From sequence record NC_016163.1: a stretch of 64,000 bases of DNA; one strand, written 5' to 3'. Within the stretch, counting starts at the first letter, position 1; every line of letters starts with the position of its first letter. Made by a program: the position numbers and the translations under genes. Of this stretch, positions 11,977 through 58,905 are shown piece after piece. The notes below the pieces were generated by a model, which was not told where the DNA came from, ran no database searches, and saw nothing but the letters and a program-made list of their open reading frames with translations.

Positions 11977-12087
11977 TATAAACCCTATACCCTCTTTATG
12001 AAGGTATAGGGTTTATAATTTGAATTTCAATCATATATTATATTAGTAGTAACAGGAATTTAGTAGTTTAAAACCGAAGGTATTCCA

Positions 12088-20997: not shown

Positions 20998-21792
20998 TTA
21001 TTTAGTTCTAGTCGGTTTGTAAGTACCGTTAGCCACATCTTTTAGATAAGGTTTATACTTAGTCGATCTAATATACATAATATTCTTAGGGTATTCTCTA
21101 TTAATCTGGAAGAAGGATTTACCATAGCCTTTTACAGCTACCTTTGATTTAGTAGAATACTTTTCAATATTATTGAACCACAAGTCAGGATTGCAACCCT
21201 TAGTATTTTTACAGATAGCTCTATCTTTTAGAATACCACCATAACCACCATTGTAGCAGCTGAACATCATAGCCATTCTATCTTCAGCCTTACCAGCCCA
21301 TTTTACCTGATTATAGCAAGTACGGTTCAATGTAAACATAGCAATAAACTGATAATATGGATCATAACGCTGAGACCATTCCCAATTCTTTAATTTAGCG
21401 TTCTGTTGTTTTAGACCAGTAAAGTTATTGAATTTAGAAGTGATAGTTATCTGAGGTATACCAAAACCATATTCTCTAGAGGTTTTAAGTTCTGTAGTAG
21501 GATTCCAGCACTTAGCTTTACTTGCACAAGATTCTTGTTCAGCTTGTCCAGCAAAATAATGAGAATTATGATTCATTGAAGGCCAATCATTAACAATGGC
21601 ATCTTTAAATGATGGTAAAGACTGCTTAAACTTAGTATCATTAATAACATCATAAGCTCTAGCATTACTCAGCATAGAAAGAAAAAGCATTGCACAAGCT
21701 ATTAGTGTAGTCTGTAAAAGTATTCTCCACCAATTTATTTTTTTCTTTTTCATTACTAATACCTTAAATTTAACGCTAAAAGGATTTTTCAC
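20998..21792 (-). CDS. Lytic transglycosylase (SLT-like) endolysin with N-terminal signal/anchor
   Basis: AGQAEQES, YGFGIPQIT, SCYNGGYGG; basic plus hydrophobic N-terminus ending in NARA. Confidence 0.8.
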   Translation of the reverse strand: MKNPFSVKFKVLVMKKKKINWWRILLQTTLIACAMLFLSMLSNARAYDVINDTKFKQSLPSFKDAIVNDWPSMNHNSHYFAGQAEQESCASKAKCWNPTTELKTSREYGFGIPQITITSKFNNFTGLKQQNAKLKNWEWSQRYDPYYQFIAMFTLNRTCYNQVKWAGKAEDRMAMMFSCYNGGYGGILKDRAICKNTKGCNPDLWFNNIEKYSTKSKVAVKGYGKSFFQINREYPKNIMYIRSTKYKPYLKDVANGTYKPTRTK

Positions 21793-21807
21793 CTTTTAGC
21801 GTTAGTT

Positions 21808-22158
21808 TTATACAATTTTCAACATATCCATCAGTTTCGCTAAGATAAAGATAATAGAAGCGAATACGATAGCTGCTGCAATAGGTTCTGTTTTTGCGGT
21901 ATTATACAGCTCTAATAGTGACATATCAGGGAAGAAAATACCTCTCAGGAAGTGCGCGAACCATACAGCTAGTACTGAGATAGCTACAGAGGTAAGTAAC
22001 CCACTAAACTGAGCAAAGTTATCATTTCCGCCACCATAAAGGAACAGACCCACAATTAAGAATACCGGAATAAAGTTAATTAGTTCTTTAGTCCAGTTTA
22101 CTTTAATTTCTGGTTTCTGGAAGTGCTTAAACTTCCTTTTACCAACTTTTTTTTCCAT
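21808..22158 (-). CDS. Putative holin (3 TM)
   Basis: Three hydrophobic segments, basic N-terminus, directly upstream of the endolysin; late promoter at 22189-22200. Confidence 0.6.
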   Translation of the reverse strand: MEKKVGKRKFKHFQKPEIKVNWTKELINFIPVFLIVGLFLYGGGNDNFAQFSGLLTSVAISVLAVWFAHFLRGIFFPDMSLLELYNTAKTEPIAAAIVFASIIFILAKLMDMLKIV

Positions 22159-22246
22159 CGGTTTTTCCTTAGTTAATCATGAAATAACTAAAGAACTGTT
22201 AGAAAATAAAACACCCCATATCCACTTTTAAGGATATGGGGTAAAT

Positions 22247-27608: not shown

Positions 27609-27645
27609 AGTAAGATTACCTTTTATTTATCTTATATAAAAGAAC

Positions 27646-27657
27646 TAAAAAGTTGTT
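27646..27657 (-). promoter_or_regulatory. Late-type promoter AACA-N6-TA
   Basis: Plus strand TA-aaaagt-TGTT. Confidence 0.65.
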
Positions 27658-31833: not shown

Positions 31834-31862
31834 AATTTGTTTTACCTTTTTATGAAAAGATC

Positions 31863-31874
31863 TAAATTTTTGTT
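31863..31874 (-). promoter_or_regulatory. Late-type promoter AACA-N6-TA
   Basis: Plus strand TA-aatttt-TGTT. Confidence 0.65.
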
Positions 31875-34707: not shown

Positions 34708-34748
34708 AGATAAATCCTTCGTATTAGATTTTCTTTATATAAATATAC

Positions 34749-34760
34749 TAAGAAATTGTT
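34749..34760 (-). promoter_or_regulatory. Late-type promoter AACA-N6-TA
   Basis: Plus strand TA-agaaat-TGTT. Confidence 0.65.
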
Positions 34761-37613: not shown

Positions 37614-37700
37614 ATTAGTTTATCCTGTGTAATAAATAGTCAATGATTTTCATTGTCAACTATTAAAGTGTTGAATAGAATTAATTAGAATTTATTGAAA

Positions 37701-37750: not shown

Positions 37751-38272
37751 TTATGCAAAGGGTGGTAAAGGCCATTGGTTGGCAGAGGGATGTATATAAC
37801 CTCTATTATCATGTGCATCATCAATTATCCATTGAGGCACAGATGGTAAAGGCATATCCCACCAATTATCAAGAGTGGGCCAAGTTTTAAAAGCTATACG
37901 TGTAGAAGTAACTTCTTCTTTCTGTTTATCAGTTAAAAGTGTGTCATTAATAGTGTAGTCAGAAAGCATCATTACATCTGTAGCTCGAATAAAGGTATTA
38001 CGAATCCCTCTGCCAATATCTTGTTTTTCTACAGTTGAATATTGATAGGGAGGTATATCCTTCCAAGAAAAAGTTTTCTTAGATGCGTCATAAGTTCTTT
38101 TCTTACCTTCAGGCGCATTTGTAAGGAAATATGCCTCATACACTTCAGGAGTAATTTCTATTCCATCCGTAGGCCAAGTACCTGAATCTTTATATGATTG
38201 GTAAAGTATATATGGATAACATACATCTAATGATGGAGAATACATATAATTTAAATTGACTTCAGTATTCAT
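37751..38272 (-). CDS. Second tail fibre assembly chaperone
   Basis: YSPS...SYKDSGTWPTDGIEIT...APEGKKR...SWKDIPP pattern of P2/Mu-type Tfa proteins. Confidence 0.75.
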   Translation of the reverse strand: MNTEVNLNYMYSPSLDVCYPYILYQSYKDSGTWPTDGIEITPEVYEAYFLTNAPEGKKRTYDASKKTFSWKDIPPYQYSTVEKQDIGRGIRNTFIRATDVMMLSDYTINDTLLTDKQKEEVTSTRIAFKTWPTLDNWWDMPLPSVPQWIIDDAHDNRGYIHPSANQWPLPPFA

Positions 38273-40469: not shown

Positions 40470-40523
40470 AATCTTTCCTAATTTTTAAATATTTAATATG
40501 TCACATACTAAATTTTTGTTAAG

Positions 40524-40558
40524 AAATCCCTAATGACCAGAAAGATCATTAGGGATTT
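40524..40558 (-). terminator. Terminator-like hairpin ending the TM/PAS operon
   Basis: aaatccctaatga / tcattagggattt. Confidence 0.7.
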
Positions 40559-40570
40559 AGATATTTAGTA

Positions 40571-41203
40571 TTAGTGAGTCTTTTCGAATTTTACTAAAAC
40601 GAAAATTTTGCTTCCAATACTTATAGATGAAAGTGTAGCTAACCACTTTCTTGCGCCGCCCATATCTCTCAGAGAGCAAGTTAAATAATCCTCTGCATAC
40701 GGGATGTAAGACTGAACATCTAGGTCTAACGAATTGATTGGTCGTTTAAACTGGTCAAGTTCCGTTAGCTTAGTTTCACACTCTATAACTTCTTCAATAT
40801 TTTTACCAACTACAGTTTTATCAGATGGTATAATATTTTTCATTAAAGCATTCAAGCGTATTACAGTTCCCCAACTATTACATAAAAGTACGGGATGACT
40901 ATAAGTAGCTAATAATTTATCTAAATTAAGAGATTTACCCTTTGAATTCTCTTCATCAATAAGATCCTTCACTATTCTAGCTAAAGCAGATACTTCAGTT
41001 AGAGTATTTCGAGAATCTTCAACCATTTGAATAGAAAGTTCATCGGATTTAGTGAATTTAGACTCAAACTGGTTGACCGTTTCACTAAGTTGAAGGGTTG
41101 CAGAATGAGTCTCTATAGCGTCTCTATTTTGAAACACCATTCCTTTTGCCAGCTTTAGGCCAGACTTCCTAAAGAAGTCTTTGATGTGTGTTAGTATTGA
41201 CAT
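40571..41203 (-). CDS. Coiled-coil plus PAS-like domain protein
   Basis: LLATYSHPVLLCNSWGTVIRLNALMKNII...VVGKNIEEVI fits the PAS N-terminal consensus. Confidence 0.6.
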   Translation of the reverse strand: MSILTHIKDFFRKSGLKLAKGMVFQNRDAIETHSATLQLSETVNQFESKFTKSDELSIQMVEDSRNTLTEVSALARIVKDLIDEENSKGKSLNLDKLLATYSHPVLLCNSWGTVIRLNALMKNIIPSDKTVVGKNIEEVIECETKLTELDQFKRPINSLDLDVQSYIPYAEDYLTCSLRDMGGARKWLATLSSISIGSKIFVLVKFEKTH

Positions 41204-41218
41204 AGTATCATATCATAA

Positions 41219-41548
41219 TTACTTTCGGTTAGTTAGATATACTATCAGATTCGATAGCAGTTCTTTGATTTCCTTATCAGAAGCATTTCGGAGGTTTTGC
41301 TGTTCAATTAATGACTTCATCGCCTCATCGTTTCTTTTAAGAAAACTATCCTGAATTTTTTCGATACTTTCTCGCCAAGTGTTTCTTTCAGTAGTATGCC
41401 TAGTTATTGCACTTCTATATAAACGATGGACTCTTCTGACTTCTAAAACTAAAATAATAACCATGAGGATGAAAATAGTAGTTATAGTTTCTAAACCACC
41501 GCTATATAGCTTCGCTATAAAAAGCGCATATAGTCTGCCGAAGTCCAT
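41219..41548 (-). CDS. Single-pass membrane protein with cytoplasmic coiled coil (holin-like?)
   Basis: TM ITTIFILMVIILVLEV followed by RRVHRLYR; late promoter at 41592-41603. Confidence 0.65.
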   Translation of the reverse strand: MDFGRLYALFIAKLYSGGLETITTIFILMVIILVLEVRRVHRLYRSAITRHTTERNTWRESIEKIQDSFLKRNDEAMKSLIEQQNLRNASDKEIKELLSNLIVYLTNRK

Positions 41549-41708
41549 ATAGCAATCCTTCTAAAAATTTTAAACAAAACATAAAAGATTCTAAATTCTT
41601 GTTTCAAAAACCTTAATGTGGATCATATAAATTTTAAAACTTTGTGTAAACAAACAATCTTTTTAGGATATATAATTACTTGGAATACCATACTTAAGGT
41701 ATAAAATT

Positions 41709-47557: not shown

Positions 47558-47608
47558 AAAATTCGTTATAACAAACAAAGTTTTAGAATTCCACAAGGAA
47601 ATTTATAA

Positions 47609-48931: not shown

Positions 48932-50026
48932 TAAAATGGCTCTCATTAAACCTCTTTAATTGTCTGGAAAACCTTAATTACCGCGAATTAAGACAACCAG
49001 CAGCGAAGCTTATGGTATTAACACCTATAAAGGATTATAGGATGCATAAGAACGTTCAACGACTATCGAAAGTACTTATGATAATTCATAGGGTAAATGA
49101 GTAGAGTAGCGCCAAGTGGTAGGTATCATAATGATAATAGTTATGAATAAATCCTTTAAAGCGAAACGGGAGGCAAAGGATTGAAGATATAGTCTGATCT
49201 GCATGGTGACATGTAGAGTTAGTTGAAAGTGATTTCTTAACAAAATCTTAGTATCTAAGAGGATTTAATTTATGCCAGTTAAGAAAACACATGCACAATT
49301 CGTAAAAGAAGTTGAATTAAGATTTGGAAAAGAATATACAGTTTTAGGGGAGTATAAAAACACTCATACTCCAATAAAACTGCGGCATAATAAATGTGGT
49401 AATATATGGGAAACTACTGCTCCATATGATTTACTAAAACCAAAACCTAATGGTTGTAAATTATGTGCAATTAATAGATCATTTCCATTGACTACTAAAG
49501 AATTTTCAGTTAAACTAAATGCAATTCATAATAATTCTTATAAAGTTCTGCAAGAATATAAGAATAATAAAACCAAAATTTTAGTTCGCCATAATTGCGG
49601 ATATGAATTTATGGTTAAACCGAATAGCATTCTAACAGAAAAGTTTAATTGCCAATCATGCCAAAAAACAAATTCAGTAATAAGTGATTCAATTGCTGAA
49701 TTTCTTAATGAAGAAAATCTTAATTTCATCCAAGAAAAAAAGTTTAAATGGTTAAAATATGAATCTCTATTATCTATAGATTTCTATCTGCCAGATTTTA
49801 AAATTGGTATAGAAGCTGATGGAGAACAACACTACATTCCTAAACGTGGTGGAATTAAAGAGTTTGAAAAAACTCTTAAGAGAGATTTGATCAAATTTAA
49901 ACTTTGTAAAGAACATGGTATAGAAATACTGAGAATACCTAGTTTTTTAACTAAAAAAGAAATTTCTTTGTATCTTGGAAAACTTCTTTTAGAAAGAAAT
50001 GTCTTTCAACTAGATTAACACAAATG
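48932..50026 (+). mobile_element. Group I intron in gyrB (1095 nt) with homing endonuclease
   Basis: Exon ends in U48931 and intron ends in G50026; splicing restores EG|DSAGG; P1 ugagggu/gcucuca; core P aattgtctggaaa, Q caaccagcagc, R gttcaacgacta, S aagatatagtct. Confidence 0.93.
49272..50018 (+). CDS. Intron-encoded endonuclease: Zn-ribbon repeats plus Vsr-like PD-(D/E)xK domain
   Basis: Two repeats ending in CxxC; IDFYLPDFKIGIEADGEQH. Confidence 0.8.
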   Translation: MPVKKTHAQFVKEVELRFGKEYTVLGEYKNTHTPIKLRHNKCGNIWETTAPYDLLKPKPNGCKLCAINRSFPLTTKEFSVKLNAIHNNSYKVLQEYKNNKTKILVRHNCGYEFMVKPNSILTEKFNCQSCQKTNSVISDSIAEFLNEENLNFIQEKKFKWLKYESLLSIDFYLPDFKIGIEADGEQHYIPKRGGIKEFEKTLKRDLIKFKLCKEHGIEILRIPSFLTKKEISLYLGKLLLERNVFQLD

Positions 50027-57615: not shown

Positions 57616-58905
57616 TAACTTATATCTTTTTAGTACTATCTAGTGATGTATCCTCCCAAAATTGATCCCTAACAGTGTTTTAGTATCTATAAGGATCAAT
57701 TATGAAAAGTAAATCAAAACAACTTAAGATAATTAGCAAGAAGTATTTAAATGCATTAGATTTCTATTATAGTAATGACCATTCGGCAACTTTTGTAGCC
57801 AAAAAATTTCAGCTATCAAAAAATACTTTGTTGAGAATGGTTCGTCTTGGAAATTTTGAAGAATTACCTGATGGTAATATAGCTGAAAAAGATCAAGATT
57901 ATTATATGTGGAAAAATATAATGCATATTTACAAAACTACTAATAAATCGGCTAATGAATTATGTCTAGAATTCAATGTAGGTAAATCATCCTTTGCTAA
58001 AAATCTTAAATATTTTAATTTAAGTTATAAAGGTAGGAGTAACCTGATTGAATTTAAAAGAGATATATTTTCTAAAATAGATTCAAGCGATAAAGCATAC
58101 TGGCTTGGGTTTATTTTAGCTGATGGTTGCATTTATAAAAATGAATTGCGGCTTAAATTAGGGAAAGTAGATTACGTTCATTTGCAAAAATATTGTGATT
58201 TTTTAGGGCTGAGTCATAATCATATTGTTAAAGATGCACATACAATAAAAGTAATTGTATGTGATAAAAAAATGATTATCGATCTTAATAAATTAAATAT
58301 TTTTTCTAAAAAATCATGTAAAGAAATTCCACCCATAATAGATCCTATTTTTCATAGAGATCTATTACGTGGATTCTTTGATGGCGATGGATGTATTAAA
58401 ACAAATCTTGCTTCAATATCTTTAGTAGGTAGTAAGGATATGATGGATTTCTGCAATAAAGTATTCCATGAAGAATTAGGAATACCTTTAGGTAAAGTCT
58501 ATTCAGATAAAAAAGTTTATAGATTGGCTTGGTATAGTCTTTTCAATAAACAAAGTATCCTTAGTTGGTTATATGATGGGAGTCATACATATTTAGATAG
58601 GAAATTTAGCTTAGCTAAAAAGATTGGCCGTCTATGAAAGTAATTTTATAGATTATTATTGGGGAAGAAAACGGGAAGGGTTTAGCTATCCTAATCCGAC
58701 TGGAAGGCTATATTTAAAAGTATAGTCACAGGCAACGCATAGTAGGTGAACCTTATAGCGATATAAGAATATAATCCTGCCACGAGTCCCCGACATCCTA
58801 TATAGGATGAAAAGATATGCTAGGCTGGATTGGAAAAGACCAATCGATGAAAATGAGGGAAACCTCCAGAGAGTAAGATAAAAAGCTTACTGTTAATAAC
58901 TACCG
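57616..58905 (+). mobile_element. Group I intron in gyrA (1290 nt) with LAGLIDADG endonuclease
   Basis: Exon ends in U57615 and intron ends in G58905; splicing restores IG|RYHPHGD; core after the ORF: aaaacgggaagg, aatccgac, ggcaacgcatag, aagatatgctag. Confidence 0.92.
57702..58637 (+). CDS. Intron-encoded two-motif LAGLIDADG homing endonuclease with N-terminal HTH-like region
   Basis: AYWLGFILADG and LLRGFFDGDG motifs. Confidence 0.9.
   Translation: MKSKSKQLKIISKKYLNALDFYYSNDHSATFVAKKFQLSKNTLLRMVRLGNFEELPDGNIAEKDQDYYMWKNIMHIYKTTNKSANELCLEFNVGKSSFAKNLKYFNLSYKGRSNLIEFKRDIFSKIDSSDKAYWLGFILADGCIYKNELRLKLGKVDYVHLQKYCDFLGLSHNHIVKDAHTIKVIVCDKKMIIDLNKLNIFSKKSCKEIPPIIDPIFHRDLLRGFFDGDGCIKTNLASISLVGSKDMMDFCNKVFHEELGIPLGKVYSDKKVYRLAWYSLFNKQSILSWLYDGSHTYLDRKFSLAKKIGRL

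Follow-up and report, generated by a model that had tools for sequence, protein, structure and literature searches.

What is done by a pair of small jumbo phage genes, one encoding a predicted single-span membrane protein and the other a protein that ends in a sensory fold with no enzyme attached? The question arises in a 64,000-nucleotide (nt) stretch of sequence record NC_016163.1, hereafter the window, whose source is the Yersinia enterocolitica jumbo phage phiR1-37 (AJ972879.2 / NC_016163; 100% identity); all coordinates are window positions, obtained by subtracting 186000 from the record position. The element at issue is a cassette on the minus strand, g302 followed by g301, bounded by a promoter motif and a terminator hairpin. 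GenBank gives neither gene a product, and neither the GenBank and BFVD records nor the phiR1-37 studies consulted name a function for them. Structure models lead us to describe Gp301 as a sequence-orphan, stand-alone PAS protein in an unusual two-gene arrangement. As to function, our tentative reading, plausible although short of probable, is that the pair forms a PAS adaptor or sensor without enzymatic activity, which is tethered to the membrane and acts on a membrane event late in infection.

The original prediction, which was made from the letters alone, described a self-contained promoter-to-terminator operon with open reading frames (ORFs) of 109 and 210 amino acids (aa) separated by 15 nt. 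In essence this anatomy holds, on solid statistics, with frames and gap lying exactly where they had been placed. Its parts are as follows.

41591–41603, minus strand: promoter motif AACAAGAATTTAG (AACA-N6-TAG), with a predicted +1 at the A at 41592 and a 5′ untranslated region of ~43 nt
41556–41560, minus strand: Shine-Dalgarno-type ribosome binding site of g302 (GenBank regulatory feature 227556–227560; GAAGGA in the sequence)
41219–41548, minus strand: g302, 109 aa, predicted bitopic membrane protein (ORF)
41438–41494, minus strand: predicted transmembrane segment of Gp302, residues ~19–37 (Kyte-Doolittle hydropathy)
40571–41203, minus strand: g301, 210 aa, predicted soluble or peripheral protein (ORF)
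41138–41200, minus strand: predicted cationic amphipathic N-terminal helix of Gp301, residues 2–22 (hydrophobic moment)
40580–40924, minus strand: predicted PAS-fold domain of Gp301, residues ~94–208 (structure prediction)
40524–40558, minus strand: terminator hairpin closing the cassette (folding energy, GenBank annotation and conservation)

The 15-nt gap between the genes (41204–41218), together with the weak ribosome binding site of g301, suggests that translation of the two is coupled.

Gp301 ends in a predicted PAS domain

In the predicted layout of Gp301, an amphipathic helix at the N-terminus leads into a helical linker, and a C-terminal domain with a PAS fold follows behind ~90 helical residues; this fold is a five-stranded antiparallel β sheet with flanking helices in which the elements follow each other as Aβ and Bβ, then Cα, Dα, Eα and Fα, then Gβ, Hβ and Iβ. 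We modeled residues 86–210 with AlphaFold2 (AF2), using three orthologues and five models, and the best model (predicted local distance difference test, pLDDT, 67; predicted template modeling score, pTM, 0.65) displayed the canonical PAS order bb-aaaa-bbb (E-E-H-H-H-H-E-E-E). When this domain was searched against the PDB with Foldseek, the top 50 matches were all PAS domains, the best being FixL (1d06; E 4e-5, TM score 0.67), followed by EcDOS, NtrB-PAS, PpsR, PYP, and NifL, and alignment to PAS structures with VIA-align yielded Z scores of 9.5 to 11.5 over 105 to 116 residues. Searches of the Swiss-Prot AFDB, BFVD and the ESM Atlas with the domain model agreed on PAS. In the ESM Atlas, the domain on its own obtained a PAS-cluster feature score of 0.96, which about 1 in 100 shuffled proteins reach, with TM scores of 0.63 to 0.74. 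The fold was thus reached by two independent predictors (AF2 and ESMFold) and in five libraries.

At the level of sequence, the domain was silent. The PAS-clan Pfam hidden Markov models (HMMs; PAS, PAS_3, PAS_4, PAS_8, PAS_9, and others) did not match Gp301 or its isolated domain at E ≤ 10, the models PF00989, PF13426, and PF08448 did not match anywhere in the 262-kb phiR1-37 genome at the same threshold, and a phmmer search of the PDB with Gp301 found nothing. The "C-terminal PAS-like domain" of the original prediction accordingly stands as a fold, by AF2, ESM and Foldseek, and does not stand as a match to sequence HMMs.

This silence raises the possibility that the PAS call is an artefact of prediction and that Gp301 has some other α/β fold unrelated to sensory domains. 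Such a view would also account for the failure of four of the five AF2 domain models (residues 151–171 were poorly modeled), for a full-length single-sequence AF2 model that was useless (pLDDT 34), and for the poor alignment of BFVD's own Gp301 model with the AF2 domain model (TM score 0.39). It sits badly with two predictors of different method arriving at the same fold, with top matches that were all PAS in the PDB, Swiss-Prot AFDB, BFVD, and the Atlas at Z scores reaching the value given above, and with a feature score that so few shuffled proteins attain. We consider an artefact distinctly unlikely, and the C-terminal domain of Gp301 very probably has the PAS fold.

Gp301 has no output domain: A Pfam scan found no HisKA/HATPase_c, GGDEF, EAL, cyclase, or HTH domain, in agreement with the earlier observation that kinase, cyclase and HTH domains are missing. 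In the model, the protein ends 2 to 3 residues after the last PAS strand, with no C-terminal signaling helix, so any output would have to pass through the N-terminal helices or the face of the β sheet. PAS domains that bind cofactors carry recognizable signatures, namely a heme-ligating His on Fα, the LOV Cys within the Eα motif NCRFLQ, or the chromophore-binding Cys of PYP. The canonical heme-His and LOV-Cys signatures and the NCRFLQ motif are absent from Gp301, whose only His residues are 6, 33, 103, and 210, none of them on the predicted Fα, and whose only Cys residues are 108, 142, and 176, with Cys142 at the start of Fα, where the model is poor.

The N-terminus of Gp301 appears to seek the membrane. 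Residues 2–22 carry a net charge of +4 and have a hydrophobic moment of 1.42 (shuffles average 0.68; P 0.027), which bears out the amphipathic N-terminus proposed originally. A helix spans residues 3–14 in the low-confidence full-length AF2 model, and hydropathy revealed no transmembrane segment in the protein.

The original prediction further held the cassette to be a possibly undescribed kind of module. The PAS fold and the two-gene layout stand, and the novelty is weakened by BFVD, which lists several short "PAS domain" proteins of 169 to 240 aa from uncultured tailed phages; because short PAS proteins lacking an output domain are already present in phage databases, the claim of an undescribed kind loses force.

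Two lineage-specific genes under purifying selection

We looked for homologues among 5.8 billion clustered proteins by word-indexed search and among 1.84 billion representatives by exhaustive phmmer. Both Gp301 and Gp302 were ORFans outside the close relatives of phiR1-37, with only 91 to 99% identical copies found; one further protein match (P0004) was discarded as a tandem-repeat artefact. Neither protein has a significant Pfam, PHROG, NCBIfam, or PADLOC family, and the phiR1-37 genome holds no paralogue of either. Besides phiR1-37, no phage in GenBank carries g301 or g302 (the next-best homologue of the nearby g304 is 27% identical), and a scan of metagenome contigs for synteny in distant phages was negative.

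Close relatives exist in environmental data, as L002 and L003 (IMG/VR 3300044857), L004 (Logan SRR17243215), and L005 (ENA ERZ1305919), with 83 to 98% protein identity across g301 and g304; GenBank holds no second isolate. Several metatranscriptome runs from 2024–2025 also contain the cassette stretch. The gene order g303, then g302-g301-g300, is kept in L003 and L004, and g304 of L003 is 83 to 84% identical to that of the window. Between phiR1-37 and L003, Gp302 is 100% identical in protein sequence, with 15 synonymous and 0 nonsynonymous differences; the omega of its neighbors would predict some 7 replacements or more (P of observing none ~0.001). For g301, the ratio of nonsynonymous to synonymous substitution rates (dN/dS) is 0.11, and all 19 substitutions fall at residues 8–66 and 127–163. 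As judged by these patterns, g302 and g301 are real genes under purifying selection.

The same comparison yielded some further observations. Synonymous divergence from L003 is 0.25 for g302 and 0.48 for g301, and ~1.05 for g300, g299, and g304; nucleotide identity is a mosaic, at 92 to 98% over g302, the terminator, and the 5′ end of g300 and 70 to 80% in the body of g300. Recombination or a constraint at the nucleotide level could have produced both features. A foreign origin of the cassette was considered and rejected, its base composition being no different from that of its neighbors. Within g302, a 57-aa antisense ORF (41379–41552, plus strand) is also open in L003 (316–489); most likely it is no gene and stays open because g302 is so strongly conserved.

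The promoter belongs to a family of the AR9 late type

To place the promoter motif in context, we compared a loose pattern, AACA-N6-TW, with the tighter AACA-N6-TAG. The loose pattern as a whole was not enriched, with 103 copies against ~158 expected. For the tighter one, 16 of the 20 copies in the window lay 15 to 70 nt 5′ of a start codon on the same strand (shuffle mean 0.6; binomial P ~1e-21). Across the genome, 53 of 69 copies (27 on the plus and 26 on the minus strand) had their predicted +1 10 to 80 nt before an ORF on the same strand, although positions at that distance make up only 4.5% of the genome. The site before g302 fits AACA-N6-TAG exactly, and its motif core and the 5′ untranslated region that follows are identical in two relatives, with the sequence just upstream having diverged. 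By its placement, AACA-N6-TAG is a phiR1-37 promoter family with at least 53 members. Further examples in the window are as follows.

12051–12063, 47574–47586, 49239–49251, and 57671–57683, plus strand: AACA-N6-TAG motifs
22188–22200, 27645–27657, 31862–31874, 34748–34760, 37660–37672, and 40508–40520, minus strand: AACA-N6-TAG motifs

The motif resembles the late promoters of phage AR9, whose non-virion RNA polymerase recognizes the consensus A(-11)ACA-6N-U-A/G(+1); like AR9, phiR1-37 is a jumbo phage with deoxyuridine-containing DNA (dU-DNA) that encodes multisubunit RNA polymerase (PMC7598289). The g302 site and 52 other phiR1-37 sites match that consensus at the expected distance from a start codon. 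The phiR1-37 family as defined here differs in adding an invariant G at +2 and a W at motif position 10, and in that phiR1-37 minus-strand genes behind the motif were called "constitutive" by RNA sequencing (RNA-seq). On these positional and comparative grounds, we take the motif before g302 to be a genuine promoter of the AR9 late type. For its new start sites, the 2016 RNA-seq paper gave no new conserved upstream motif, and a 2020 review described the late promoters of such phages as not predictable bioinformatically.

Type and timing need to be kept apart here. In the published RNA-seq data, g301 and g302 are both of class "NO," i.e., without a temporal pattern, and a "Sigma promoter" (sigma-70-type) is listed at the spot of the g302 promoter (PMC4848604 Table S2). 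Plus-strand genes behind AACA-N6-TAG (g311, g313, and g328) are classed LATE in the same table, and the minus-strand structural block g294–g300 is classed "NO," with the same U-shaped RNA profile as g301. The cassette behaves like its tail-fibre neighbors in RNA profile. Of the "late promoter" originally placed at 41592–41603, the promoter is borne out by position and conservation, and the word "late" disagrees with the RNA-seq class. Abundance differed between the two genes: The mean TGR values are 614/378/607 for g301 and 51/39/46 for g302 (PMC4848604 Table S2), about 12-fold apart. The RNA-seq runs of 2015–2016 take the form of Logan contigs of ~25 kb, which span the locus and carry neither transcript ends nor local depth.

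At the other end of the cassette, the hairpin at 40524–40558 has a 15-bp stem and a folding energy of −21.1 kcal/mol (z −6.9; 0 of 200 shuffles were as good), is annotated in GenBank as "Rho independent terminator," and is kept in the relatives except for one loop base. The original prediction had located it to the exact position; a simple terminator scan did not pick it up because its U-tract is short. Directly 3′ of the hairpin lies the AACA-N6-TAG promoter of g300 (40508–40520).

Gp302 and the lysis genes

Gp302 has a single hydrophobic segment at residues ~19–37, where a 19-residue Kyte-Doolittle window peaks at 2.42, followed by 15 residues with a net charge of +5. By the positive-inside rule, this charge points to an N-out/C-in topology, so that Gp302 would have a short N-terminal tail outside, cross the membrane with one helix, and extend a basic, helical tail of ~70 residues into the cytoplasm. 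Hydropathy and charge both agree with the single, positive-inside span first proposed, and the ESM Atlas model of Gp302 is a single long helix (pLDDT 0.80).

A small one-span membrane protein with a charged C-terminal tail brings to mind a holin or pinholin of the BhlA kind, for which Gp301 would be a cytoplasmic antiholin that lets go through its PAS domain; a lysis-timing pair of this sort was the first specific reading in the original prediction. Holin_BhlA was indeed found in 13 of the 100 ESM Atlas clusters nearest to Gp302 (feature score 0.88), which we treat only as a lead. phiR1-37 has no annotated holin, the RNA-seq authors speculate on T4-like lysis inhibition, and T4 RIII provides a precedent for a cytoplasmic antiholin (PMC11413866). 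The Holin_BhlA HMM (PF10960) matched neither Gp302 nor anything else in the genome at E ≤ 10, and g302 RNA is very low and flat in time.

The location of g302 speaks against a holin as well. Holins in general are small membrane proteins that are encoded beside the endolysin and form lethal holes. In phiR1-37, the endolysin gene is g289, whose product combines a signal/SAR-like N-terminus (SAR, signal-anchor-release) with an endolysin domain (phrog_669, E 3e-25), and its immediate upstream neighbor is not g302, which lies 19 kb away, but g290 (21808–22158, minus strand). The latter encodes 116 aa with three transmembrane segments and a basic N-terminus, and together the two genes form a lysis cassette (20998–22200, minus strand) with its own AACA-N6-TAG promoter at 22188–22200. 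Although g290 matches no family and is not annotated as a holin, the sequence suggests that g290-g289 is a canonical, unannotated holin-endolysin pair with g290 as the holin candidate; with such a candidate beside the endolysin, Gp302 need not be a holin. A holin/antiholin pair is, in our estimate, a very unlikely account of g302 and g301.

A role as two-component spanins was considered and rejected. Spanins of the Rz/Rz1 kind pair a type II (N-in, C-out) inner-membrane protein bearing a periplasmic coiled coil with an outer-membrane lipoprotein; the tail of Gp302 is predicted to be cytoplasmic, and Gp301 has no signal peptide or lipobox. Searches of Gp302 against spanin families gave a PHROG Rz-like hit at E 0.07 and no match to the DUF2514 HMM.

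The tail-fibre neighbors

The cassette heads the minus-strand tail-fibre block, g300–g294. GenBank flags g297, g298, and g300 as structural, and g299 is flagged only in PMC4848604 Table S2; g301 and g302 are flagged as virion structural proteins in neither source. As a side observation, g299 (37751–38272, minus strand), which has no GenBank product, matches the tail fibre assembly family phrog_188 (E 3e-25), so that g300-g299 mirrors the fibre-chaperone pair g298-g297.

From this setting, one might suppose that the pair is a non-virion helper of morphogenesis, a membrane-anchored PAS scaffold that merely binds proteins and aids the adjacent tail fibres g300–g294 in assembling or attaching. Its place at the head of the block, the absence of virion flags and the promoter class and flat, U-shaped RNA profile that it has in common with g294–g300 would all fit. 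The fibres are, however, already provided with Tfa-type chaperones, g297 for g298 and g299 after g300, and Gp298 trimerises in Escherichia coli with Gp297 alone (PMC13030884). A helper of this kind is therefore unlikely in our view. We also know of no fibre chaperone with a PAS fold, which counts against it too.

A proposed membrane-tethered PAS adaptor

We propose that Gp302 would serve as the anchor, inserted with its short N-terminus outside and its basic helical tail in the cytoplasm. Gp301 would be cytoplasmic, its amphipathic helix and helical linker drawing it toward both the membrane and the tail of Gp302, and its PAS domain would bind either a protein partner or a small ligand. Any signal would leave Gp301 by protein-protein contact and not by catalysis. 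As its target, we favor a late membrane event, since the cassette has promoter class and RNA profile in common with the tail-fibre and lysis block that it heads, and the timing of lysis is our best guess. Binding of Gp301 to Gp302, sensing by the PAS domain, and the target of the cassette are all things that we infer; what points to a joint function is the single promoter, the single terminator, the 15-nt gap, the conserved order, and the presence of two membrane-directed features.

Several findings weigh against this proposal. A 1:1 Gp301-Gp302 complex predicted with ESMFold2 had an ipSAE of 0.00, which we list here while treating it as "no answer" and not as evidence in either direction. The 12-fold difference in RNA abundance would be surprising if a single transcript encoded a 1:1 pair, and no internal promoter for g301 was found, be it of the PHIRE (early) or the AACA type. 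The coiled coils that the original prediction saw in both proteins did not hold up: In a crude test, heptad a/d periodicity was not above shuffles for Gp302 (P 0.34) or Gp301 (P 0.07), leaving predicted helix only, and because this periodicity is not significant, a coiled-coil interface between the two is unsupported. To these must be added the silence of the PAS HMMs, the single confident AF2 domain model, the lack of heme and LOV signatures, the ORFan status of both proteins, and the distance of g302 from an endolysin that has a canonical cassette of its own.

Some of the same findings would fit a reading in which Gp301 and Gp302 are unrelated in function and merely co-transcribed. Gp301 would then be a soluble PAS protein with a cytoplasmic target in host or phage, for example a decoy that pairs with PAS-containing kinases of the host (a decoy was also suggested in the original prediction), and Gp302 an independent small membrane protein, for example one for exclusion or envelope modification. 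The complex prediction without an interface, the difference in RNA and the different degrees to which g301 and g302 are conserved would suit this account, as would the fact that PAS domains often hetero-dimerise, which favors a decoy. It leaves the tight spacing, the one promoter, the one terminator, and the order kept in relatives to be explained, along with the membrane-seeking N-terminus that Gp301 itself carries; nor does the sequence of Gp301 resemble any host protein or link it to a host kinase. We rate independent functions as rather unlikely.

A bolder version of the tethered adaptor would be a split, membrane-tethered PAS sensor that reads a cytoplasmic cue (metabolite, redox, or energy) and gates a late membrane event such as the triggering of the holin. 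We regard this as a long shot.

Comparison with known systems

Photoactive yellow protein, short LOV proteins, and the short phage PAS proteins are single PAS domains of similar size with no linked output, as Gp301 is predicted to be, and they signal by protein-protein contact, as we propose for Gp301. Gp301 differs from them in having no PAS relation at the sequence level and no known cofactor signature, in carrying its PAS domain at the extreme C-terminus behind the helical region, and in having a partner gene for a one-span membrane protein. The best structural matches, the PAS domains of FixL, EcDOS/DosP, and NtrB (Z 10 to 11.5, TM score 0.6 to 0.67), come from sensor kinases and phosphodiesterases, in which helices precede a PAS domain beneath the membrane, as they would in Gp301. 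Unlike these, Gp301 has no DHp/CA, GGDEF, or EAL domain and no heme-ligating His on Fα, and its membrane anchor, if used, would be a separate polypeptide.

Among phages, VqmA(Phage) of vibriophage VP882 is the characterized phage-encoded PAS receptor, a kind of protein through which a phage could read a small molecule and control lysis, as may be possible for Gp301; it is a transcription factor with an N-terminal PAS domain and a DNA-binding HTH, in a temperate phage (PMC8284805), whereas Gp301 lacks an HTH and comes from a jumbo phage that is virulent. A possible model for Gp302/Gp301 is offered by the T4 holin T with its antiholins RI and RIII, where the small cytoplasmic regulator RIII binds the cytoplasmic part of a lysis membrane protein (PMC11413866), and an RIII-like regulatory role of the cassette in lysis is possible by this analogy. 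Unlike Gp302, T has its N-terminus inside and a large domain in the periplasm, and no PAS fold is reported for RIII (PMC11413866). The phiR1-37 pair is likened to the T4 proteins by arrangement and not by sequence or fold, and the neighbor of its endolysin gene is g290 and not g302. The original prediction also credits the T4 holin with a GAF-fold domain, for which PMC11413866 offered no confirmation.

Implications for phiR1-37

The majority of jumbo phage genes lack an assigned function, and two phiR1-37 ORFans here gain a structural annotation that can be tested, together with transcription signals. The AACA-N6-TAG family is perhaps more useful than the cassette itself, as a means to annotate the transcription program of phiR1-37. 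If the PAS domain of Gp301 does no sensing, g302-g301 would be one more lineage-specific accessory cassette. If it senses a ligand and acts through Gp302, this would be one of few instances in which a strictly lytic phage senses physiological or environmental conditions. Were it to gate lysis, the result would be a PAS-controlled lysis clock in which an antiholin-like protein of the cytoplasm carries the sensor; no such mechanism has been described in a phage. Sensing, if true, might also offer a possible handle on the unexplained lysis control of phiR1-37.

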